NCBI RefSeq assembly: GCF_000315625.1
Contig: NW_005434626.1
Coordinates: 321,448-385,447, forward strand
Reading direction: 5' to 3'
Length of the DNA: 64,000 bases
Origin: Guillardia theta CCMP2712
Lineage: Eukaryota; Protista; Cryptophyta
The notes beneath the pieces are model-generated. The model saw only the letters and a list, made by a program, of their open reading frames with translations. It ran no database searches and was not told the DNA's origin. Each line of letters begins with the position of its first letter. Positions within the stretch are counted from its first letter, which is position 1. This document shows, in pieces, positions 23,236-51,409 of the stretch. Made by a program: the position numbers and the translations under genes.

Positions 23236-26200
23236 ATGGACTCGAAGCGAGCTTCACGGATTGAAGCAGGAAGGGCCAAGTTAGAGAAGTGAGTGAACAG
23301 TTCCTGATGCATCGCGCCTTCTTTTGCTGAGTTTTGCTCTTAGGTTCAGGAGCAGAAAGAAAGCCTCTCACGTTTCTGAAGCCGGCCGAGATGAAAGCGC
23401 GAACGTAGTAGAAGGTAAATGTGACGTCTTCGTCGAGAGCTCCAATTGTGAGCTTAGTGCAGGAAATCCGGCTCAATCTGCGGCTCATGATGAGCAGATG
23501 AACCTTGTGGGAAAAGTAAAGTCTCTGTCGCACATACGTGAAATTGTGTGCGAAGAGGTATCAAAGGTATGCGAGGATTAATTTTTCTTTCATGATTGAC
23601 ACATTACAGACCGTCAGAAACTCTATCTCAATCAGAAATGAGCTGAAATATCTGCGAGAATCTTTCAAGAAGACAGAATGTGAAACTTGACGAGATTCAA
23701 GATGACTTGCTTACTCCCCTTGTCAATGTCAGGCAGCGGAGAAGGTTATCTTGAAGAACGTGTCACCATTGCTATGAAAATTGCTCAAGTCAGTGCGCAT
23801 TTTTCTGTTTTGTTCCTTCTCATTCTCCATTGATAGAATTTTTGATGATTTGATCAGGCAGTATCTGAAATATATGAAGCGCAATCAAAAGCATGCGATG
23901 AAAAGGATTCTTCTTCCTACAAAGAGGTTCGATTTGGAACGCGTGTTATTCTTTTGATGTAGATTTTGCATCATAGGACTCACAGAGTATCAAGGCAAGA
24001 ATACAAGATAACGTGGTCGATCTCTGTTCACAGGTTCGTCTCTGAAGGATCAAAGTTTTCATTCTGATCTATTTCTGATGGATTGTTAGCTGATATGCAT
24101 AGACGAAAAAAGCAAGCCCTGCATATCAGCAATCATGAAAAATCTATCAAGTGATACTTTTCACGTTCGATGTGATATCAACCAAATACACCAAGGTCAT
24201 GCTAACACAGAGGGGATCAACGATGAAACAGAGAATGAAATAGTTTGTTCGAAGCAACTTCACACAAAACACGAGGATATCACCAGACCACACCAAGCTG
24301 AAGACATGGCTGTCAATGTACTGCATAATGAGAATTCCGGTAATGAGCCGCAACACTCATTCAGCAGAACATCCCAAACACTCAATTTGGAACAAGAAAT
24401 ATTGTCCACAAAGCTAATCGAGATTGAGCATTTGAAAGATGAGCTTCAAAAAGCAAAACAAACAATTGAAGAGAACAACTTCAAAAAAACTATGTTGGAA
24501 GATCAAGAAACGGAGCTGCGACGGCAGGCGAGGGACAGAGAGGCCGAAGCAGCGGAGCTGAGGGCGCGGGTCGTGTATCTGGAGTCAGAGCTTGAAGCTC
24601 GAGAGCAGCGGGGGGCAGCGGGGGCACAGACACGGCTATCCAAGGGCCTGCGGGAGCTACGGGAGCTACAGAGGGGGGAGCTGGGGAAGGTAGAGGAGCT
24701 TTGCAGGGCGATGGAGGGGAGCATAGAGGAGGCCGAGAGGGAGGTGCGGGAGGTACAGGAGAGGTACGCAGAGGGCATGGAGGCGGCAACGGCAAGGAGG
24801 GCGGCGCTCGAGGAGGAGGTCCTTAGGACACGGGAGAGCCAGGCAGAGGAGGCAGGGAGACTAGGGAGGGAGCTGGCAGAGGCAGAGGCGGCAGCGAGCC
24901 GAGCCAGGGAGGCGCTTGAGGGGATGCAGCGGGAGCTGGCGGAGGCACAGGGCCAGCTGGCAGCATCAGAGGGAGAGCGGACAAGGCTGGCCAGCGAGCA
25001 GGAGGCTCGGGCAGAGCAGGAGGAGGAGCTGCGACGGCAGGCGAGGGACAGAGAGGCCGAAGCAGCGGAGCTGAGGGCGCGGGTCGTGTATCTGGAGTCA
25101 GAGCTTGAAGCTCGAGAGCAGCGGGGGGCAGCGGGGGCACAGACACGGCTATCCGAGGGCCTGCGGGAGCTACGGGAGCTACAGAGGGGGGAGCTGGGGA
25201 AGGTAGAGGAGCTTTGCAGGGCGATGGAGGGGAGCATAGAGGAGGCCGAGAGGGAGGTGCGGGAGGTACAGGAGAGGTACGCAGAGGGCATGAAGGCAGG
25301 GATGGTTTCTTTCAATGTTTCTGGACTGGATGATGAGGTCACGGGAGAGCCAGGCAGAGGAGGCAGGGAGACTAGGGAGGGAGCTGGCGGAGGCACAGGG
25401 CCAGCTGGCAGCATCAGAGGGAGAGCGGACAAGGCTGGCCAGCGAGCAGGAGGCTCGGGCAGAGCAGGAGGAGGAGCTGCGACGGCAGGCGAGGGACAGA
25501 GAGGCCGAAGCAGCGGAGCTGAGGGCGCGGGTCGTGTATCTGGAGTCAGAGCTTGAAGCTCGAGAGCAGCGGGGGGCAGCGGGGGCACAGACACGGCTAT
25601 CCGAGGGCCTGCGGGAGCTACGGGAGCTACAGAGGGGGGAGCTGGGGGAAGGTAGAGGAGCTTTGCAGGGCGATGGAGGGGAGCATAGAGGAGGCCGAGA
25701 GGGAGGTGCGGGAGGTACAGGAGAGGTACGCAGAGGGCATGAAGGCGGCAACGGCAAGGAGGGCGGCGCTCGAGGAGGAGGTCCTTAGGACACGGGAGAG
25801 CCAGGCAGAGGAGGCAGGGAGACTAGGGAGGGAGCTGGCAGAGGCAGAGGCGGCAGCGAGCCGAGCCAGGGAGGCGCTTGAGGGGATGCAGCGGGAGCTG
25901 GCGGAGGCACAGGGCCAGCTGGCAGCATCAGAGGGAGAGCGGACAAGGCTGGCCAGCGAGCAGGAGGCTCGGGCAGAGCAGGAGGAGGAGCTGCGACGGC
26001 AGGCGAGGGACAGAGAGGCCGAAGCAGCGGAGCTGAGGGCGCGGGTTGAGGAGCTCGTCGGAGAAGCGGAGGCGGTGAAGGAGAGGCTTCGGGACACGGA
26101 GGATGCACGGGAGAGGGCAGACGACAAGGTACTGAGACTGNNNNNNNNNNNNNNNNNNNNNNNNNNNNNNNNNNNNNNNNNNNNNNNNNNNNNNNNNNNN

Positions 26201-29200
26201 NNNNNNNNNNNNNNNNNNNNNNNNNNNNNNNNNNNNNNNNNNNNNNNNNNNNNNNNNNNNNNNNNNNNNNNNNNNNNNNNNNNNNNNNNNNNNNNNNNNN
26301 NNNNNNNNNNNNNNNNNNNNNNNNNNNNNNNNNNNNNNNNNNNNNNNNNNNNNNNNNNNNNGGCAGCGGGCCGAGCCAGGGAGGCGCTTGAGGGGATGCA
26401 GCGGGAGCTGGCGGAGGCACAGGGCCAGCTGGCAGCATCAGAGGGNNNNNNNNNNNNNNNNNNNNNNNNNNNNNNNNNNNNNNNNNNNNNNNNNNNNNNN
26501 NNNNNNNNNNNNNNNNNNNNNNNNNNNNNNNNNNNNNNNNNNNNNGCGACGGCAGGCGAGGGACAGAGAGGCCGAAGCAGCGGAGCTGAGGGCGCGGGTT
26601 GAGGAGCTCGTCGGAGAAGCGGAGGCGGTGAAGGAGAGGCTTCGGGACACGGAGGATGCACGGGAGAGGGCAGACGACAAGGTACTGAGACTGATCAAGG
26701 TACTTGATAGGAGGGAGGAGGAGCAGAAGGCAGCAGAGGCTCGAGCGGGAGAGCTTGCAGAGGAGGCAGAAAGACTAGGGAGGGAGCTGGCGGAGGCAGA
26801 GGCGGCAGCGGGCCGAGCCGAGGAGGCGCTTGAGGAGATGCAGCGGGAGCTGGCGGAGGCACAGGGCCAGCTAGCAGCATCAGAGGGAGAGCGGACAAGG
26901 CTGGAGGCAGAGCTGGGTGAGGTCAGCGAGCGCCTGGAGGAGCTGCAGTGCAAGCAAGAAGCTTGGTCGGACCAGGAGGAGGAGCTGCGACGGCAGGCGA
27001 GGGACAGAGAGGCCGAAGCAGCGGAGCTGAGGGCGCGGGTTGAGGAGCTCGTCGGAGAAGCGGAGGCGGTGAAGGAGAGGCTTCGGGACACGGAGGATGC
27101 ACGGGAGAGGGCAGACGACAAGGTACTGAGACTGATCAAGGTACTTGATAGGAGGGAGGAGGAGCAGAAGGCAGCAGAGGCTCGAGCGGGAGAGCTTGCA
27201 GAGGAGGCAGAAAGACTAGGGAGGGAGCTGGCGGAGGCAGAGGCGGCAGCGGGCCGAGCCGAGGAGGTGCTTGAGGGGATGCAGCGGGAGCTGGCGGAGG
27301 CACAGGGCCAGCTAGCAGCATCAGAGGGAGAGCGGACAAGGCTGGAGGCAGAGCTGGGTGAGGTCAGCGAGCGCCTGGAGGAGCTGCAGTGCAAGCAAGA
27401 AGCTTGGTCGGACGAGGAGGAGGAGCTGCGACGGCAGGCGAAGGACAGAGAGGCCGAAGCAGCGGAGCTGAGGGCGCGGGTTGAGGAGCTCGTCGGAGAA
27501 GCGGAGGCGGTGAAGGAGAGGCTTCGGGACACGGAGGATGCACGGGAGAGGGCAGACGACAAGGTACTGAGACTGATCAAGGTACTTGATAGGAGGGAGG
27601 AGGAGCAGAAGGCAGCAGAGGCTCGAGCGGGAGAGCTTGCAGAGGAGGCATGGAGACTAGGGAGGGAGCTGGCGGAGGCAGAGGCGGCAGCGGGCCGAGC
27701 CGAGGAGGTGCTTGAGGGGATGCAGCGGGAGCTGGCGGAGGCACAGGCCCAGCTGTCTGCTCCCTCGTTTGACCAAAGAAAATTTTTGATGGATGTAGTG
27801 GGAAGAAACTTGAACCTGTAAGTCTTCATTTGAATTTGCTCAAATTGCTGTTTTGTTCACTCTTGATGTGCACCAGGTCCCGCGAAGATGTTTCTGTAGA
27901 TGTGTCTTTCTTGCACGAGTTTGCCGAAGGAAGATCATCAAGAAACTCTGATGGACTGAATCATAATCCTTTCTCTGCTCATGGACGGTTCTTGTCAATG
28001 TTGAAGAAACTCAAGACTTTCTGTTCTCGTTGGTTGGCAACGTTTGTTGAAATCCACCTTGAAAAAGAATACATCACACAGGTTATCAGGGTTATCTGCG
28101 ATACAATCAGAGAAGAAACAGATTACTTGGAGAGGGAGATTGCGTCTGTTAAACGACAAGAGGGGGCAAGACATTGTTTCTCCCCTCCTCGTGACAAAAA
28201 AATTGGAAATTCTGGAAAGCAAGCCTCGACTGAAATCTCAAATTCGATTGATGATGGAAATGGATTATCATCGTTCTTGCATTCTCATCATTCAGCTTTG
28301 GATTCTCATCATTCAACTTTTTGGTCTTCCCAGGATCATAACATCGCGACAAGCAGGTGAAAGTTTGAAGGCCCATGTCAGGAGTTGACTGGCTACTGAA
28401 TGGCAGGCAAGAAATGCCCTGGCAAACCGAGTTGAGGAAATGTAGACAAGAGTTGAAGATGCAGCGAGAGACGATATCCGACCTGCGGAAGCAGAACAGG
28501 TCAGGTGCTTGCTGCCGTTTGCGGTACGGTGATCTTTCGTGCCAGGGCCCTTTCCCTTGAGCTGAGTGAAATGCACATGAAGTTCGATACCTTGACCGCC
28601 AATTCAAGATACGCCGATATGCATACTCACTACTTGCAGCTGGAGAAAGATGCAGGTTTCGACTTGCACTGCCTGTACTCCCCCGATCATTCTGATCGTC
28701 TTGAAATCTCAGCGCACAAGGATCTTGAGATTTGCTCTGATGAAATTCATCGTCTTCGTGAGGTAGCCCAAGTCATCGATCCTCGCTCTATCTTACCCAT
28801 GTACACGCAGAGACTCTGCAACGAGATCTCTGCGAACTGCAGTCTACGACAACAGGTAGACTTATTGACGCCAGGAGAACGACATCTTACCTTCTCTGGC
28901 TCAGCTCAGCGAGTCGATGGACTCAGAGAGGAGCGCTGGTTGGACTCCTGACGCTCGAGCTTCTTCCTCGACCTCACTGCCTGCTCCTGCAGCTGAGAAT
29001 GCGAGGGAGAGCTCCGAAAGCTACTTGGAGCATGTGAAACGTCAGAACGGCTGGCTCAAAGATGCGCTGAAGCGAGCGATGGTGATGACTTGACACTGAG
29101 TCTCTTAGCTGAACTCCTCTCCTCTATGCAGGATCGCGCACAGCTGACTGTGGTAGAGGGAGCAGACCTGGACGACAGCATGAGCAGTGAGGTCAGTGTG

Positions 29201-31289: not shown

Positions 31290-31470
31290 CTGATCGGATC
31301 ACTGATACTAGTGATTACTTCAACTTAGTAACTGCGGCGGCGGCCGGGCCCGGGGCAACGCCGGGCCCGGCGTGTCACGGTCACTGTCACCCGGCGGTAC
31401 AACCGTCATGATTGCGGCCCGGCCGTCCGGGACTCGGTGACTAACTAGTAACGTCTACTACCGGTCACCG
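31290..31470. other. GC-rich micro-palindrome block between the GGGGT array and the Crypton
   Basis: ggccgggcccggggcaacgccgggcccggcgtgtcacggtcactgtcacccgg, gggactcggtgactaactagt. Confidence 0.55.
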
Positions 31471-31789
31471 ATAGTATCTAGTTCCGTTTCGAAAATTTGT
31501 TCCGGCGTGGTAAATGCTCAAGGTGATACAGCGGGGACTCCTGAGTTCGGAGAAGATTTGTTGGGGGATATAACGAACTTAGAGGAGGACACCTAGAGGA
31601 GAGATGCCAGATGAGAGGAGGTAGAGGAGAGGAGGTAGAGGAGAGATGGTAGAGGAGAGGAGCCTAGTAGTAGAGGAGAGATGGTGGAGGAGAGGAGGTA
31701 GAGGCGAGGAGGTAGAGTAGAGATGCCAGAGGAGAGATGGTAGAATAATGTAGGTGAAACATATGTTCATCATCATTCTCATTCCACTG

Positions 31790-34700
31790 TTATAAGTCTT
31801 TCAACAATTCTGCAGCATATGTCGTTCTTTCCCTACTCTCATCTGAAGACTCCATCGAGCCTTGTGTGTGGTCCGGTCTAACTGTCGTCCTACCCTTCTC
31901 CAAGTGTAACTTGTTGCAAAACGTGATGTAACTCAGCTGTTCATATCTGTGCTTGAGTTCACGCCTTTCCCATGCCGACTTCCCGTATGCTCTCTCAACC
32001 AGCACATGAAACGATTTGTCGTAACATTCCTGGACGTTGTCTGCCCGTATCTCGTCTCCTTCACCAATCGTTCCGTTTTCCCGGCAAATCTTCTCTATCT
32101 CCTTCATCACGCACCTTGCTTTGTAAAGATTCCTCCTGCTGGTTTTCGTTTTCAAGTCATGGCTCAGATTCAGTTTGTAAAAGTTATAAAATGGTCTGAT
32201 TCTTTGTACCCTTCCATCAATAGTTCGAATCCGCCCTTGATACCAATACGTCATCATGTTCCTGACTGATACTTTGTGTGGCCATTCGAAATCTCTAGGA
32301 ACCATGTGGCGCTCTCCCCCCCATTCGAACCAATCGCCATCTACTTGGTCATCATTCAATGATTGTTCTTCGCCTGGCGTCGCATCATCGCTGTCTGCTC
32401 CACTGTTCAATGACCCATCTTCTTCCATGTCTGATCCTGAGCTTGCTTCCGAGCTGTTTTCCGAAAGCATTTCATTGTCTTGTGTTCCTTCCCGCCATAC
32501 ATACCTCTGTTCCACCGAACTTCCGTCTCGCACAGAATTGTTTGCATCCAAGACTGATGTCATGATTTGATTTGGTGTCTCACGTTCATTCACACCGGCA
32601 AAGTTCATCTCTGTATTCCTTCTCATTTGCATCAACAAGGTGTGAACATCTCTGTTCATTCTGAACAAAAGTTTCATGTTCTCCTCCATGTTATGCAGCT
32701 TCATCCAAATTCTTTTGAAACCTTGCTGTGTTTGTTTTGAGTTCTTCTTCAGTGTCTTGTTCAGTGCTTTGTTGTGGGCATTCAATTGTTGTGTCACCAT
32801 GTCTAACGCCTTTGTCATCTCTGACTCCATTGACTTGGTCGATGCCGCCACTGTCACTCCAGACTCTGCAGATTTTCTCATCACGTCGATTGTGAGCATG
32901 CCTTCAACCTTTGATACTTTCGTCACTAGCTCCTTGATCGTATGAATGATATCCGTCTTTGTTGGAATCCCATGTGCGAGCATGCCACACTCTTGGCAAC
33001 TGTGAACCTTCAAAACTACTTTGTCACGTAGCTGATTCAATCTACTCATCGTGTCCTGTCCAAACATGCCAAATAGCGGAATTTCCCATATGGAATGCTG
33101 TGGATCAGGGAACCATGCTCGCAGAGTAGGAAGATGATACAAAATACTAGCCAGAAAGAAAGGAATACAATTTCTGAACCCCCGCGGCAGTTCATTGAAA
33201 CTCTTGATGAATTTGTCCCATCCTATCGCTTGTATCTCTTGCATCCCTTCAGGGGAAAAATGTGGTGGTAGCACAGCAAATTCTGCCGTACTAGGATCGT
33301 TCCCTGCTAAAAGTCTGCCACACATCTGATCGCCTCCTGCTCCTCCCACGATATACTGGTCCTCTGTGTCACCTGTCAACCGCAATACTCAGCATAGTGC
33401 CGTGGAGAACATCACACTCATGAATGACCTATCTTCCAGTTGGCTCGAATATAAACAGTAGGTGCCCCTGCATTGCACCATTCAGTAAACCATCATGCAA
33501 CGGTTGGCCCATACCTGGTCCTTCCAGAAAAGCAAGGAGATGAGATATTCCTCCCTTCCACAGCGAATGACTCCCTGCTTCTTCCAAGTTGCCATGATAC
33601 TGGTCTGCAGCTTGTCGAATCGCTCTTTGCAATAACGTGCAAAACCTTTGCTTTTGGTCTGATCCTGGGAATAACTTCGTTCCAGAGAATGAGAGTTGCC
33701 CATGTCGCGTGGCAAATATATACAACCCAAGAATGAGAATAGGACACATTTCTGGAGTGTAGGGCGATGCAAACACATGTTTTATCCTTGTGCTTCGCAT
33801 GTCAGTACCAATGCCACACTGATCTTTTTTTGTCTTGAGTAAGACTACCTTCATGCAATCATTTTCCCAGTCAAAGTGCTCAAGATGTAAAATGTCTAGA
33901 CTCTCACTTCTGCATACTAGGTTCCACATGACTGAACAGCATGCCCAAGAGAAAATCCATGAACTGCCGGACTCTGAACTTCCTCTGCGAGGTCTCAGCT
34001 CCTTCAAGATGTTGTTGAGTGCCTTATACTCTGGCATGGATAGAGTTATCTTGCCCTCGTGGGCCTGCATCACACCGTCGCCCTTCTTCCGGGTAACTTC
34101 TTTGGTATAGGAATTGATGTAACCATCCAGAATGTCATCCAATGATCTTCCGCCTGTTTTCAACCCGATTGCCGTAAACATAACATTCCTGCGTCTGTAC
34201 AGATATTTCAACGCACTTTTATACCCCTGGACGGTGGAAGCAGCTACGGTTGCTTTGTCTCTGCTTGATACTTGCACAGTGTTGGCTACTGCCTCTGCCT
34301 GACGCTGGTGACCTGCCACGTCTGGGGTATCTGCATTTTCTTCTTCTTCTTCGCCGTCCGCGCTTAGTGCCGATGCTGCCTTCCTCTTGGACCCTGCTGT
34401 CGTCATTCCTTCGTGCTCACACAGCCAACCAAAGAAAGCCTGGAGCAAGTCCAATGGCAATGGGAGCTTCAGGTTCGTGCGACCTGGGTTGAGTGCTGCG
34501 TGATATCTTGGATCCTTCTGGAAGAACTCGATCATACCCATAATTCGATAAGCATACGTCTCTTGAGTGCTTCGGCTCACAGTGTTGAATTCCAGATCAA
34601 GAAATGCCTGGATGTTGGGGTCATCTGAAGCCGAAATGCTACAAGCCTCAGGGTCGTCAAATATTCTCAGAAGCGCATTCTTGTCCTTCACCCTCTTTCT

Positions 34701-35018
34701 ACGTGAACGAGGTGCATGCTTTCCACATTCATCATTGCGATCCGAGCCAGCTAACTCCCAAGCACAAACAAGGTGAAAGCACAACCTGCATATTTTGCAT
34801 ACCTTCAGAACAGCGTTTGCCTCCTTTTGCATTAAGCAAACAGCACCGAAGACACACGTGTTGGGCTGTGCCACAGCCGGAGGGTTCGTAGAACCGGATG
34901 GAGAGAGCTGATAGACTTGTTCGTGGTCATGACTATCACCTGCCGGACTCGCGCAGGCTTGGTTGTCGTCCTGGAGACCAGCCTCCAGTGGTTGGCTCTG
35001 TCCGCCGTCCTCCGCCAT
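31790..35018 (-). mobile_element. Crypton-type tyrosine-recombinase transposase gene (~1041 aa; exons 35018-33515, 33467-33429, 33372-31790)
   Basis: Two GT-AG introns (33468-33514, 33373-33428) fuse the 529-aa and 531-aa ORFs in frame, giving HSLWKGG..GPGAPTVYIRANWKIGDTEDQYI..GGDQMCGRLLAG..FAVLPPHF. Also STVQGYKSALKYLY, WNLVCRSES (R), KTKKDQ (K), HVFASPYTPEMCPIL, and a C-terminal VPRDFEWP..WYQG..IRPF (GCR1_C-like) domain. Element ends not identified. Confidence 0.88.
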
Positions 35019-36180
35019 TGCTCAGGGTGCGAGGGTACGTCCTTCTTGAGGCTTGGAAGGACCCAGTTCTGGGAAGTAGTTTGGAGGGGTGGAAAGGGAC
35101 CCCCACCCCTCCATCCCTATTATGTACACTACCCCCACACCCCCTTCTGCATCTTTCTGCTTGGCAATTTTATTTTTTTTCGTGGTTTTGGGGTCCCAGC
35201 CGCAAAAAGTGTCTTTCTTGCTTTTCTTCCATTTTTTGGAATCTCGGCGCTAAAACACTACGAGAATCTTTACTCAAAGTTAAGTTAAAGATCAGTACGA
35301 GGACAATCAGGAGAGTCGAGGATCGTTCGTTCGATCCCGGAAATAAAATTGGTTCTGGGTTTCCCTCATATTTGAAAATTACATAAGAGTTATTTCAGAT
35401 ATTCAAATGGCTTCAAAGAATTTTTCGAAAGGTAAAGGGTAGCTTCACCCCAATTATTAGATCATATTGCGCTCATCTTGGGGGGTGGGGTACTTCTTTT
35501 TTTCTTCCGAGAATAGAACGGGCTACTTAGGGGAGGAGGAGGAATCGAAACCGCATCAGGCAGGTATGGCACGATGAACGTTGTTCATTTTATGTGGTTC
35601 AATGCAGTCTGAGTGAGGGTGAAGAGTTTAGAGGGAAGGGATTGCTAGGCTCGAAGAAGAGTATGAAGAGTTTGTTTGCTGAAGAAACGTGTGAAATGTT
35701 GGATCATGGCAGTCGGTTCTCACCTTCGTCCGGTTTTGTGGGGCTTTTGTTCCGTGGTTGTGTGCGAGAGGATAGAATAAGCAGATTTGGACAGACAAGC
35801 TTGTGTTCTGATGAGATTACGAACTCTTTGATCATGGTAGTCTAGTAGTTGAGATGTGGAAACTTGTTGTGTGTTGCTGGTCTTGGGCTATTACTAATCC
35901 AACCTTTGCAGAAGGAAATGTTCCAGACTGTTGCTAAGACTCAGACCACCGAGCTCTGGATGTGGAAGATGGAGTACCTCCACCACGAGCAGCGCCCCCT
36001 CTACTTCGGCGAGTGGTTCTAAGCTTATTCATTATGAATTTATAGCTTGAATAAACCATGTTGCTCGAATCTCGTGGTTCTTCGTTTGCGCCTTCATGGA
36101 GCTGATAATCAAACTGTATGTATCGTAGACTCATATGATAGTCCAACTGTTGGTATCTTAAGCTATAACAATAACATCTC

Positions 36181-37945: not shown

Positions 37946-38165
37946 CCTCACACTTGAGCCATGGCGACACTTGGTTCGGCTGATCCACGCTGCTCCTCCT
38001 CCTCCTCCCCCTCTCACCCCCTGGCCGACCGCTCTTCCAGCATGTCCACCAGCTCACGTCAGATGTTTTAACCTCATCCCCACTAAGTCCCGTCGTAATG
38101 CTGACGGGATGCTGGACGGAATGCTGAATCCTCCTGCCCCCTCCTTCCTGCCCTCTTACATCCGC

Positions 38166-38450
38166 CTCCGTCTCCTCCGTCTCCTCCGTCTCCTCCGTCT
38201 CCTCCGTCTCCTCCGTCTCCTCCGTCTCCTCCGTCTCCTCCGTCTCCTCCGTCTCCTCCGTCTCCTCCGTCTCCTCCGTCTCCTCCGTCTCCTCCGTCTC
38301 CTCCGTCTCCTCCGTCTCCTCCGTCTCCTCCGTCTCCTCCGTCTCCTCCGTCTCCTCCGTCTCCTCCGTCTCCTCCGTCTCCTCCGTCTCCTCCGTCTCC
38401 TCCGTCTCCTCCCTCTTGTCCCTCTTGTCCCTCTTGTCCCTCTCGTCCCT
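38166..38450 (+). repeat. (CTCCGTCTC)n 9-bp microsatellite, ~27 copies, followed by ~4 x CCCTCTTGT
   Basis: Directly visible. Confidence 0.95.
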
Positions 38451-38453
38451 CTC

Positions 38454-38832
38454 CTTGTTCTCCTGAGCTTCTTCGATTCCCTTCCTCTGTTGTCTGCTTT
38501 ACCCCCACGACTTCGACTCGTCCTCCATGTTGTTGTGTCCCACATGACCACATTTCTCATCCCCTGCATTTCCTCCCTCCTTCCTTGGGTACAAGTAGAC
38601 ATCGTGACCTCTCCCAGCATTGCCGCCTCTGTTAGCAGCTTGTTCTCCTGAGCTTCTTCGATTCCCTTCCTCTGTTGTCTGCTTTACCCCCATGACTTCG
38701 ACTCGTCCTCCATGTTGTTGTATCCCACATGACCACATTTCTCATCCCCTGCATTTCCTCCCTCCTTCCTTGGGTACAAGTAGACATCGTGACCTCTCCC
38801 AGCATTGCCGCCTCTGTTAGCAGCTTGTTCTC
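38454..38832 (+). repeat. 185-bp tandem duplication (2 near-identical copies)
   Basis: tgttctcctgagcttcttcg.. begins at 38456 and 38641, with a third partial start at 38826. Confidence 0.93.
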
Positions 38833-45896: not shown

Positions 45897-48485
45897 TCAT
45901 TCATTGCTGCAGAATGGTTGAGTATCGATTCCAACCTCCACGATCATCAGCACTTTTCTCTTGACCGCACCAACCTCCGCTTGCTCATGGATGCCTTTTC
46001 CGATTTTACTGACCGACCGTGTGCCTGATGCGTCATTCTGAATTGAAAAGGTGCTCCAGCCTTCTCGATTGAGATGCAGTACAAGCCACTCTGTCTTGTA
46101 GCTAGCTTTCCTGTGACTGATATATTGTTGAATGACGCTCTCTGTGATTGTCTCTGATAACTCCAGAACCATGAACACATAAACATCGAGGTCCTTACTC
46201 AAGAGGCGAGAGATCGCCTTTGAAAACTGTTTTCTACTTAGAGGTGTCTTCCAATTCTTGAACTCCACTCCTCCCTCCAAAGGTTTGTCGCTTGCACAGG
46301 TTGGTCCTGTAAAGGCATCGTCCCTGCCCTTTCTGTCCCTGTTTCGGATGTAAAAGCCCATGAACGGCGAAGCTGCACTCTCCTGCTCATCCGATAGCAC
46401 AGGAGCTAAGTTAGACATGCAGGTCTTCAGGATTTCCACGAAGCTTGCTTTGTTTGCGAGAGAAGCAAGAATCTCATCGACACTTCGCTTGTCGTTTTGA
46501 ATACCGCAGTGAAAAGCGATATTCTTCAGAAGGTCCTGAGGGGGAGACCAGCTGCTGATCATCATGACGACTGCACCAAACGACTTCAACTCGTCTCCAC
46601 CTGACTTGTACGCATCCACATTAATGGGATTACTCCAAACTGCCTTCTGCTTGTGGATGCCCTGCAAGACCTCGAGCGCTGATCGTCGAGAGAAAGGGAG
46701 CCCTCCCCCAGCACAAACAGCCACGGTGATGGGGTCACGCAAGGCGCTAGGAAAACACGAGTTCAGATCGGGGAGACGAGTGCCCTTGATTCTCATTTCC
46801 TCATCGTCTTGTTCTTGGGTCAGAACAAGCATAGATTCACTGCTGCCTCGCAGTGGCGGTTTACTCTGCCGCACATTCAGCTGAGCAAACCCTTTGGAGA
46901 TGTGCAACTGAGAGACAGGGCTGTGCGCGGATATCTGAAACATGCAATAGATAGATTCGTCCATTAGGTTCCTTTTGATCCGCTTCACTTCTTCGAGGAC
47001 CTTGCTGGAGACCGTTCGCATCAAACTGCATGGAACGGTATCCCCTTCTTTTTTCAAATACTTCAAAAACAGCGAGCAGAGCCATGGATTGACGTTGTCC
47101 AGCAGCTCATCGAGCCGTGCCTCTGCAAATACCCTTGTCATCGCTTCTTTGTCCTGGTTCGACGACAGCAGGTATCTAGGAAGCGAGCGATGCGTCAAGC
47201 ACACCATCATTCGACCTTCATGGCGACTGTGCTCGTAGACAGGCTTTGAGATCCTATCCATATTCATGGCCGCACTATTCGTCCCTAGCATAATGCAGTG
47301 AATTCCTGCGGTTGTCAACACCCTCTTGACGAGCATCAGCTTCGCGATCGCTGTGTAGTCCTGCTCATCAGGAATGGTCTCATCCATTAGAACCAGCCGC
47401 CGTTCCCATGTCCTAGCTTTCTGCACAGAAACTGGGGCAACTGTAGTCGTCTCATTCCACAAGTAGCCCAGAGCTCCCAGTATGTACCACGTTTGTCGAA
47501 AATCTGTGACATCCAAAGCTGACAAACTGACAGATTCAATACTCGAGGTAGGAGGTGCAGACTGCACCAACAAGCGCAGGTCGGTATTGATGGCCAACGC
47601 CATGAGATCTGTGATGCTTTCTACGTAAGAGTACATGAGCCGCACCATGTCTGGGTTCGAAGGGCGGAAAAGGAAGTAGATACATTCTTCTGGATGTCGA
47701 ACAAAGAAATCGGCAGCGCACAGCGACTTCCCACTGCCAGAACAAGCTTCAATCATACATAAGTGAGTGGAAGCTGTAAATTCCATTTCAGTCTCCATCA
47801 GTTTGTCGATTGGGTTCATTGCGCTGAAAAGCTGGCTCGCTCTTACCCCTGACGATTCCATTGTGTTTTCACCATCAAGAACAATGATAAGATATCGCCG
47901 CAGGGACGACAATATACTGTGCATCTCAACTTTGTTGGCAAGCCGCTGAATAGCTACCGATCAAACGTTCAGAAGTTATTGGGGCTCATGTTCAGACTCA
48001 CCTGTAAAGAAGTTTCCTGTTTCACCGTACATTCGATGAACGACGCCCTCACAAGCTTGTCTGAGATCTTTCTCGACAGTTGCTACCGAGATTTCTAGAC
48101 TTGCATCCTCAAGATGGTAGCGAGCGCTTGATATTTTGATCTTGTCTCCTGTGCTTTCAGCCTCCCGAAGCCCTGCCTCTCTGACTTTCTGCTGAGCCCT
48201 TGCGATCTTGCTCTCGTCTCCTGTGCTTTCAGCCGGCCTGTTATGCTCACTGTTCTTCTCACCTCCACCATCATTTCCTCCTCGTATCCGAAGACAAGAG
48301 CGCTGACAAACCGTGCTCTGCTCGCGATCGAACCGTTGGGGGGGTCCAGGAAGGAAACACAATCCCTGCAGGAACAACACAAGTTCAAGAAGCTTCTATC
48401 TAGCATTGAGGTTGATGTCTACCTCTGAGCTCGAAATGATGATTGAGCTCAACCAAAGGAATCCAAGAGGCGATACGAGCGACAT
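45897..48485 (-). CDS. Signal peptide + LRIRGG + P-loop NTPase + PD-(D/E)xK-like nuclease protein (Crinkler/RHS-like architecture), ~827 aa, 3 exons
   Basis: Exons 48485-48423, 48365-48002, 47953-45897 are joined in frame by GT-AG introns; MSLVSPLGFLWLSSIIISSSEG-LCF..CLRIRGG; Walker A ACSGSGKS, Walker B LVLMDE, LGTNS; C-terminal GRDDAF...GVEFKNW. Confidence 0.75.
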
Positions 48486-49431
48486 GGAACCCACGACGCA
48501 CTCCCCCTTCTGCTGGTAAAGAGCAAATTTAGGCTTGACGGGAAGGCTTGTTTGACATGAAGGTTACCTGTATTCTATCTGCTGCATCCCCCCCCCCCCA
48601 TTTACACACATACACCCTCGCTCGCTCTGCTGCTCGCTCTGAATCTGTTTCTGTTGCTCCCTTCCCTACCGTCCCTACCTCCCTTCCCCCCTCCCTTCCC
48701 CCCTCCCTCCCTCCTCCCTTCCCCCCTCCTTTCCCCCCTCCCTTCCCCCCTCCCCCGACACTTTATGGTGAGTCTCAGCAGTATTGTACCCAGCATTGTA
48801 CCGGGATTTGTAGGATTCGAAGTAGGTTCAATACTTTTCCTGTACAGCTAATGGGATCTAGGTAGGATTCAATGTGTTACACATTTTTTTTCTGTCAAGT
48901 TTATAGTTCAAACTATAAATTGGACTGAGCGAAAATTCATGTTTTAAAACTAAAATCTTTTTGACTATATTTGCTGACATTTTACTCAAAATTAAGCCTC
49001 TAATAATAAGAATAGCTAGTTTGGGAATTGAATCTATGTACTGATCCTTGTTCCCCTGCTTGTCGTGCCTGCTGTCGCTTGCGTGGTTGGAGTAGCGGTT
49101 TTCGCTGCCTCCTCCGTTTTTCAGTGTTTCATTGAGGCGGTCTTGTTTGATTTATCCTCGTCCTCCTTTGTTTGCTCCGGTTTGCTTTTCTTTTTCAGTC
49201 CATAAAAAACTAATTGAATCACCACGGTGTTCATGTATGTTTCATAGTGATCCAGCCGAGACGTTTTTGCTGACACTCGTGCCATATCGTTTGATTCTTC
49301 TGTTATGCCTTGTCTCCAGTTTTCTAACTTGGCGTTATTCTGAGTAATATGAAACTCGTGATAGTACTCCCTTCGCGTATATCGGTACTGTTTTGGTTTT
49401 TCTTGACCATGTATTTGCTTGATACCGCATA

Positions 49432-49797
49432 TCAGTACATTGCGACCAGGATCGATTGCAATAATTCGTCTTGAAGAAACAAGGTTGGATGCAATGGCGT
49501 TACTGCTCGGCCAAACAAGGCTTCCAGGTTCATATTCGATTCCTCTTCAAGCTTCTTCTTCTTCTCGTCCTTATTCATCATAAAGAAGAAAAGGAGTCCT
49601 GCCACTGATACTACAAGGAAGGCTTTAAAGACCGTCATCTCCGTATCCCTTAGACTCTGAAGGATGACAAATTTCCCATCCAATGGATCAAAGACGACCT
49701 GTACGTCGTCATAGACATCCGCATTGGTGACCCTCCTCCTGTGGAAGTTTCCCATCACGGCGAGCATGATGACCAAAACAATGTCATCATCATTCAC
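49432..49797 (-). CDS. Small intronless membrane ORF, possibly of viral/foreign origin (start uncertain)
   Basis: VYDDVQVVFDPLDGKFVILQ..VFKAFLVVSVAGLLFFFMMNKDEKKKK; lies directly downstream of the Cys-repeat pseudogene on the same strand. Confidence 0.4.
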   Translation of the reverse strand: MNDDDIVLVIMLAVMGNFHRRRVTNADVYDDVQVVFDPLDGKFVILQSLRDTEMTVFKAFLVVSVAGLLFFFMMNKDEKKKKLEEESNMNLEALFGRAVTPLHPTLFLQDELLQSILVAMY

Positions 49798-49824
49798 TAT
49801 GCTTGAGTTCGGAAAGGTGGACGT

Positions 49825-50150
49825 CTACACATATGGCCGATTACAGTGTGCAGAAGCAATGCCAGCATACCCCGACTCGTGTGCTCATAAACGGATCGGG
49901 ACAGGCAGTACACTTGTGCGTGACGTGGCAGCGGAGGCATAGTACCCCAGTTGGCAAGGGGTGCACACGCTGTTTACACCGTGACACGGATACCGTACCC
50001 TCGAACCCATCATCGCAGAAGCAGTCTGCAACCGATGTACTCCCCGCTCAGTGCGCTGGTGGAATTTCCAGGACAGGCATAGCATGCCGGGAACAGGTTG
50101 CAGCGCTGCTCACGATAAGTCCCCGCGGGACAGATACTGCAGAAGTACTG
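49825..50150 (-). pseudogene. Frameshifted Cys-rich repeat (GCC2_GCC3/ephrin-receptor-like) gene fragment
   Basis: Removing three micro-insertions restores YFCSICPAGTYREQRCNLFPACYACPGNSTSAAGSTSVADCFCDDGFEGTVSGVNSVCTPCQLGYYASAATHKCTACPDPFMST. Confidence 0.8.
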
Positions 50151-50689
50151 CCCCTCTCCCCTCCCTCTACCCATCAACCCCTTCCAACTCCTGCCATGAG
50201 CTCCCTCTTTCCTTCAAGGCTTCCCCCTCATGGACTTCCTCCCGTACGGCCTCGACTCCGCCGCTGACCCCGCCTTCGTGTCCCTCCCCTTCCCCCCTGC
50301 CAGCCTCTACTCCAAATGCAGCTCCTCGACCTCTCCCGAATGCTCTCGTCGTCGCACACGACGATTACACTTCCTATCTCCCACCTCCTACCTTGCCCTG
50401 CTCGCGGGCCTTTCCCGACGATCTGAGGGCCCTCGGGGCCCTCCGACGAGGACGATGAATCCGATCCCGGCTTCCTCGACCTCCTGCGGCAGGAGGGAGG
50501 AGGGTGAAGAACCGGGGGAAGATCCTGAAGAGGATCAGGGACCGAGGCCTGATTGCAGGAAGATGTCCGGTTGAGAGCTGTAGGCAGGATTTTGAGTTGT
50601 CACACGAGTATAAGGATCTTGGAGACTGAGCCTTCTGTTCATCGCCTGTGCGTTTGAACAGCGCTCAAATTCTCCGAACAGCAGCACTC

Positions 50690-51320
50690 ACTGATGCAGT
50701 GCGGTCACAGTGGCAGCATCAATCATCCGCCGCCGGCCCCAAAGCCCCCGTGTGATTGTCCCATCTCAGCTGCCCGCGGCCAGAAGCCTTTGTCACAGTG
50801 TTGTGGCTTCACAGAGTCAAGGCTTCCGGCGCCCAGCGGCCCGGGCCGGGACAGCCGGGTGCCGGGCTGCCGCGCGCGGCAGTGCCCGGTGCCATATGCC
50901 ATGATACTCCACGGTATCCGCCTCGGCCCTGCGCGGCGGAGCCTGAGCCTCGCCGAGCCTGCCGGACTGTCGGTCCCGGGCCGGGCGCGGCGAGACCCGG
51001 TGACCCGGCGGCCCGCCGGGCCGGGCGGTGCGGCCCGGCCCCGGCGCCGGTGCGGCGAGCCGCCTCCCGGCGAGAGGAGTCCGACGGGCCCGAGTGCCAG
51101 TGCGACGGTCCGACCGTCCCGACGATAGCCAGTACGGTACGGTCCTTTCAACCGTTGAACTGACGGCCCTGTGAACGGCGCCGCCGCCGGTCGAGGCCCG
51201 GGCGTTGGAGCGCCCGGCCCGGCGCCCGACCGGCGGCCGGGCCCGGCCGGAACTCCTCGGAGCCTCGGAGTGCCGAGGCCACTGGCAGTGGCCTGACATC
51301 TTTTGGAGAGCCTCGGAGGA
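50690..51320. other. GC-rich micro-palindrome block (right side of island)
   Basis: ggcccgggccgggacagccggg, ccggtgacccggcggcccgccgggccggg, agtacggtacgg, ccactggcagtgg. Confidence 0.65.
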
Positions 51321-51409
51321 GCCCTAAAAAAAACATTATGAGACATAAATATATTATATATATCAATCTTCTTTCACCCCTAGTAAACAAGTAGATAATG
51401 TTGGAAAAG

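Follow-up and report, generated by a model that had tools for sequence, protein, structure and literature searches.

Small frame-breaking insertions in a decaying cysteine-rich gene fragment of Guillardia theta and their possible origin in repair or replication

Two truncated genes at one locus

The locus studied here lies within a 64,000-nucleotide stretch of the Guillardia theta CCMP2712 genome; this whole stretch is called the window, and all positions are given in its numbering. On the minus strand, a remnant of about 330 bp (49835-50165) passes through four successive frames, from 50165 down to about 49835, with no stops within the individual pieces. It is a fragment of a cysteine-rich surface-protein gene of the Ephrin_rec_like (GCC2/GCC3-type) repeat class. 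The first piece alone scores 22.8 bits against the Pfam profile PF07699, for which the cut-off is 23.1, and the remaining pieces are too short; the assignment comes from collinearity with paralogues. Two intact giant paralogues, on contigs C299 and C138, have open frames of 4957 and 5461 amino acids, contain many PF07699 matches each, and correspond to the remnant in a collinear, residue-by-residue manner over an internal segment. The amino acid identity of the remnant is 53% with the C299 paralogue and 59% with the C138 paralogue, and all 11 aligned cysteines are retained with respect to both. In this genome, the repeat class is expanded to more than 1600 candidate repeats in open frames of up to about 5600 amino acids. 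Because the homology between the remnant and its paralogues starts and stops abruptly, the remnant is an internal fragment of a giant repeat gene rather than a whole gene. A search of the 87-Mb assembly of 669 contigs found no second copy or close ancestor at the DNA level, and the remnant is therefore single-copy.

The remnant is an ordinary gene fragment in decay, with four frame changes, one stop codon and truncated ends, and with intact relatives elsewhere in the genome. RNA depth was zero over 49691-51200 in the approximately 6% of one run that was sampled; given this sampling, silence of the remnant is likely, short of proof. Intact paralogues, abrupt ends, a broken frame, a stop codon and no detected RNA are all shared with ordinary truncated pseudogenes. 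The remnant differs from them in two respects: each of the four breaks is an insertion, and every cysteine is still in place. This suggests that the decay is recent or that the ratio of indels to substitutions is high.

Immediately downstream on the same strand, an open fragment of 130 codons (49824-49435) continues in the frame of the last cysteine-rich piece, from which it is separated by an in-frame TAG (49827-49825). This frame matches a family of single-pass membrane proteins of about 200 amino acids (60% identity, E=3e-34) over residues 80-193, approximately. Judged by this alignment, it encodes the C-terminal two thirds of a small membrane protein and does not belong to the repeat gene. 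The N-terminal exon, which would encode the first 80 or so residues, is absent from the window. Elsewhere in the genome, the gene occurs as one intact copy of 214 codons on another contig and as two distant copies; the genomic locus recorded along with the fragment is C131:101705-102337. Its sole public homologues are encoded on gene-dense metagenome contigs that are possibly from giant viruses, one of which carries a heliorhodopsin gene and a PolB-exonuclease-like gene. These neighbours hint at a viral origin of the membrane-protein gene, but apart from this gene itself no synteny linked the window to the gene-dense contigs. With a second truncated gene and repeat fragments beside the remnant, the locus as a whole is an accumulation of truncated sequences in silent DNA.

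The repeat fragments lie on the plus strand. A fragment of a young interspersed repeat (49219-49481) overlaps the 3′ end of the membrane-protein frame. It is 92% identical to the rest of its family, the other copies of which are 98-100% alike, and where it differs, it often has T or A in place of the C or G of the family, as in the deamination of an old, silenced copy. Beside it is the 3′-end fragment of a second repeat (49033-49215) that resembles a non-LTR retrotransposon. The copies of this repeat, here and at further loci (L056-L089), share one fixed 3′ end but are truncated to varying extents on the 5′ side, and its read depth is about 150 times that of unique sequence.

Four frame breaks and the words inserted at them

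The four frame breaks are real DNA. Two contigs from different studies, of 6756 and 1267 nt, span 49435-50701 with no differences from the window, and raw ChIP-DNA reads, at about 12-fold depth over the breaks, contain no indel and no variant. With three DNA data sets in agreement, assembly error is ruled out as their cause.

We derived the net size of each break from the spacing between conserved residues across the family repeats compared. Break 1 (50045-50054) has a net gain of 4 nt, as judged from the motif S-xx-GS, which is found in 14 of 15 family instances. Break 2 (49975-49996) has a net gain of 7 nt, the corresponding interval being eight residues in both close paralogues, and contains the perfect odd palindrome CCGTG-A-CACGG. 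Break 4 (49873-49882) has a net gain of 4 nt, as both paralogues carry CPDP, five further residues and then G/A-x-A-G/S at this point; the odd palindrome CGA-C-TCG lies inside it. Break 3 (49916-49932), which contains the odd palindrome CGT-G-ACG and a near-tandem pair, CGTGA/CGTGG, is compatible with several sizes. A gain of 2 nt fits best, leaving the eight residues that are the mode of the family (93 of 142); a gain of 5 nt leaves seven, a minor class (21 of 142), and one of 8 nt leaves six, as in the closest paralogue.

The initial annotation had read these frameshifts as micro-insertions, repaired by deleting CGTGACG-, CGTGACACG- and TCAG-centred words at 49919-49925, 49980-49988 and 50048-50051, and had thought a fourth, ACTC at 49875-49878, plausible. 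All four words are present at these positions. By family spacing, the reading as net insertions holds at breaks 1, 2 and 4, the last of which thus passes from plausible to supported by both paralogues, but the size of break 3 is not fixed: the 5-nt removal proposed there is one workable option beside the better-fitting 2 nt and the possible 8 nt.

The words themselves are a different matter. When we enumerated all removals by which the frame is opened while the flanking anchors stay in place, 4 solutions of 4 nt were found at break 1, 11 of 7 nt at break 2, and 7 of 4 nt at break 4, and break 3 admitted 8 solutions of 5 nt or 12 of 2 nt. Removals that contain TGA or TCA are a minority overall, and none occurs at break 4. 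On this enumeration, the exact inserted word is ambiguous at each site, including the TCAG of break 1, with several removals fitting. The intact paralogues to which the initial annotation had looked for ancestral states do exist and support net insertions, but, as the best of them are only 53-59% identical in protein sequence, they cannot fix the exact words. A 4-nt insertion of TCAG/CAGT between GCT and G, as at break 1, is found again in one repeat copy; this recurrence is suggestive only.

Two of the words had also been described as carrying a duplicated CG. We consider that these dinucleotides are better read as the outer arms of the odd palindromes CGT-G-ACG, CCGTG-A-CACGG and CGA-C-TCG. 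Odd palindromes are present at three of the four breaks, against 0.97 expected, a marginal excess (P=0.043), and the arm of five at break 2 has a probability of P=0.06. When hairpins with any loop of 0-3 nt were counted, the four pseudogene sites showed no significant excess (P=0.23).

Insertions and deletions in transposon copies

An independent catalogue of indels was compiled from 89 repeat-copy sequences totalling 338 kb, in which each event was polarised by majority rule among at least three homologous copies. The catalogue is small, its 14 non-tandem insertions of 4-9 nt coming from two repeat families. Clean copies of the tyrosine-recombinase-like element were few, and one aligned badly, so that its multiple alignment was not used alone. 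An element copy in the window (31594-35171) contains a 529-amino-acid frame with a weak match to the phage-integrase SAM-like domain and has copies of 90-95% identity on three other contigs. At a point at which the other copies overlap by about 9 nt, it has about 85 extra nt (32569-32652), and these resemble a small nested insertion that duplicated its target.

The initial annotation had named beforehand, as a result that would refute it, the lack of a TGA/TCA bias among insertions. The bias was found: TGA or TCA is present in 7 of the 14 non-tandem insertions of 4-9 nt, where matched random positions would give about 2 (p=0.005 if whole loci serve as the null, p=0.0014 if only aligned regions do). 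Among the 32 trinucleotide pairs, this pair is the most enriched, followed by GTG, CGT and AGT. No such enrichment is seen in deletions from the same alignments (4 of 14), and in the unpolarised and weakly polarised events, the excess is not clear.

The insertions also tend to form small hairpins. Their mean hairpin arm is 2.93, against 1.35 under the null, a value reached in none of 300 simulations; arms of at least 4 occur in 6 of these 14 insertions (2.2 expected, P=0.017), and odd palindromes with arms of at least 3 overlap 6 of them (2.1 expected, P=0.005). Deletions show no hairpin signal, with odd palindromes at 1 of 14 (1.1 expected). Among insertions of any size, 6 of 8 odd palindromes have T-C-A or T-G-A at the centre, against a background of 16% (p=0.0004), this being one of several palindrome tests that were post hoc. 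Odd palindromes with such centres include ACT-C-AGT, CCTT-C-AAGG, GCCT-G-AGGC and CGT-G-ACG. A search up to 20 nt into the flanks for templates of the inserted words gave no significant result for short words, and the true tandem duplications alone were conspicuous. In a young repeat family, one clean recent event replaced 1 nt with 7 nt without any duplication, as is typical of end-joining.

Other parts of the original proposal found no support in this comparison. It had envisaged insertion at CpG with a 2-bp duplication of CG; none of the 24 non-tandem insertions of 3-12 nt duplicates CG, and there is no constant duplication length. Its view of a process dominated by insertions, similar to a genome defence, is not supported by the counts (54 insertions against 94 deletions) or by the single-copy state of the fragment. 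It had further suggested that the words fill the GC-rich intergenic blocks, one of which (50756-51332) lies in the neighbourhood of the fragment and consists of GGCCCGG-type words with some GTCAC and GAGTC. This claim is weak: CGTGACG occurs at chance frequency (4 counted, 3.8 expected), whereas GGCCCGG-type words dominate the vocabulary of the blocks (35 against 4.9). The remaining counts are small, with 2 for CGTGACACG (0.27 expected), one of which is break 2 itself, and 2 for CCGTGACGG (0.28 expected); related 7-mers are about twofold enriched. Because the 9-mer of break 2 is an odd palindrome, its reverse complement differs only at the centre, which weakens the coincidence that had been drawn from the reverse complement at 31371. 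Nor do the inserted words, at 55% GC against a background of 49%, resemble material from which GC blocks could be built by repeated insertion. Taken together, these observations give no support to the idea that the GC blocks are built by a process targeting CG. A divergent copy of the 5′-truncating repeat, L056, contains extra words similar to those of the GC blocks, namely CGGGCCCGGG, GACTCGG and GGTGACTC.

Origin of the insertions

By what route could such insertions arise? We consider that ordinary decay of a silenced fragment, through insertions left by template switching or end joining, is the best explanation, with a probability of roughly 60% given the small samples. According to this explanation, two truncated gene pieces on the minus strand make up a silent mosaic at the locus, and the cysteine-rich one decayed through four independent small insertions (net +4, +7, +2 or +5, and +4) and one stop codon. 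At each insertion, a DNA end or a nascent strand would have folded back or switched template within a few bases and copied its own complement, either by snap-back synthesis during alternative end joining or by template switching in a quasipalindrome, so that short palindromes would remain around the added bases. Templated repair was among the candidates initially proposed, and it fits the data, in that the insertions in transposon copies form hairpins and odd palindromes. We infer that the insertions in the pseudogene came from the same process as those in the transposon copies, and the enzyme responsible is likewise putative.

Both routes have known counterparts. In alternative end joining, snap-back synthesis by Pol theta generates short insertions, a few bases long, that can pair with the sequence beside them (PMC4912351, PMC5068794, PMC9303309), and template switching in imperfect inverted repeats yields similar insertions (PMC7202029, PMC7954356, PMC9435742). 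As in Pol theta snap-back, the transposon-copy insertions add, as a statistical tendency, a few bases complementary to the adjacent flank, forming a small hairpin; they differ in that the arms lie very close together (with centres of 0-3 nt, often of 1 nt) and that the enzyme is putative. Quasipalindrome template switching likewise produces frameshifts and clustered changes when a strand switch perfects an imperfect inverted repeat; here, in contrast, the imperfect ancestral repeats are not demonstrable, because a close ancestor of the fragment is absent. Family-A DNA polymerase domains are encoded at several loci of the genome, on contigs C61, C7, C91, C21 and C120, with several separate pieces at each locus. 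The genome has spliced genes, to which the splitting of these matches corresponds, and more than one such polymerase.

Two features are left unexplained by generic snap-back synthesis, both based on small numbers. First, it does not account for the TGA/TCA excess and the T-S-A centres; we know of no description of such a centre preference for snap-back insertions. Second, if insertions make up 36% of indels, the probability that four of four breaks are insertions is about 2%.

A less probable explanation, although one that retains some weight, is that the four breaks have no common mechanism: they would be unrelated ordinary indels, their patterns would reflect the free choice of which bases to call inserted, and the enrichments in transposon copies would be flukes of small samples. 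The many removals that fit each site, most of them without TGA or TCA, agree with this, as do k-mer counts near chance, an enrichment built on only 14 events, and the post hoc nature of several palindrome tests. Against it, the TGA/TCA test was predefined and gave p=0.0014-0.005 on independent sequence, and deletions from the same alignments were negative.

We regard as rather unlikely an undescribed process with a sequence preference of its own, in which small insertions in unconstrained DNA would carry a signature of odd palindromes centred on T-C-A or T-G-A. The agent could be an unusual repair polymerase, or else a nuclease or transposase with a site preference, and its sites would be of the GTSAC, CTNAG or GANTC type, which have vocabulary in common with the GC-rich intergenic blocks. 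If this were true, the TGA/TCA-cored micro-insertions of the initial annotation would be a genuine and undescribed mutational process.

Still less probable is that the breaks were left by the excision of a cut-and-paste transposon. Hairpin-forming transposases classically leave palindromic additions as their footprint. A hAT- or Transib-like element that hairpins the flanks on excision would add palindromic bases on rejoining, and such bases are present at the breaks, together with the 5-nt near-duplicate CGTGA/CGTGG at break 3 and CACGGTG on the coding strand at break 2. In their small net insertions with palindromic bases at the rejoined site, the breaks resemble the footprints of hAT and Transib/RAG elements and P nucleotides. 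They differ in retaining no target-site duplication, and no matching element was found and no hAT domain detected. The 24 catalogued insertions include none with a CG or other consistent target duplication, and this applies equally to the CG-targeting transposon that had been suggested at the outset; a search of the genome for the hAT dimerisation domain was negative, this search having had no positive control. Four separate visits within 330 bp are also unlikely, and the clean recent event of 1 nt to 7 nt left no duplication.

The original model, in which TGAC/TCAG-type words are inserted at CpG with a 2-bp duplication as an indel-based defence of silenced DNA that builds the GC blocks, now has very little probability left. 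It agrees with the TGA/TCA excess and with the recurrence of TCAG/CAGT between GCT and G at break 1 and in a repeat copy. The missing CG duplication and the lack of any bias towards insertion, however, largely refute it, and neither the composition of the inserted words, which differs from the block vocabulary, nor the single-copy fragment speaks for it. RIP consists of C-to-T transitions in duplicated DNA. The proposed defence resembled it only in effect, as an inactivation of unwanted DNA; what we observe here is indels in single-copy DNA, with deletions outnumbering insertions in the sample. Finally, the intact cysteines and stop-free pieces might recall sequencing or assembly errors, or a functional gene, with the extra bases being taken out or bypassed as it is expressed, but we give this almost no credence in view of the three identical and independent DNA data sets, the lack of RNA reads over the region in the sampled part of the run, and a fragment that has no N-terminus and ends in a stop.

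Ordinary decay through repair or replication scars is thus a process of a kind already known, and an indel-based genome defence building GC blocks is not supported. The fragment provides a clean example, in a little-studied eukaryote, of genes being broken by small insertions that form palindromes. If the T-S-A and TGA/TCA bias holds genome-wide, it would give insertions a distinctive signature, from which one particular nuclease or repair enzyme could be traced, and it would be relevant to the annotation of pseudogenes and silenced insertions in the Guillardia theta genome.

Several other features of the window were recorded. A stretch of 56 nt (35268-35323) is 100% identical at no fewer than 20 places in the genome and is conserved far above its surroundings. 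Long tandem arrays (24135-27830 and 38075-38830) have repeat units of about 441-514 nt, in which both strands contain open frames, and a 9-nt array and a 185-nt pair are also present. On the minus strand, an open frame of 675 amino acids (45897-47924) has no Pfam match and at least six paralogues in the genome at 66-75% DNA identity.
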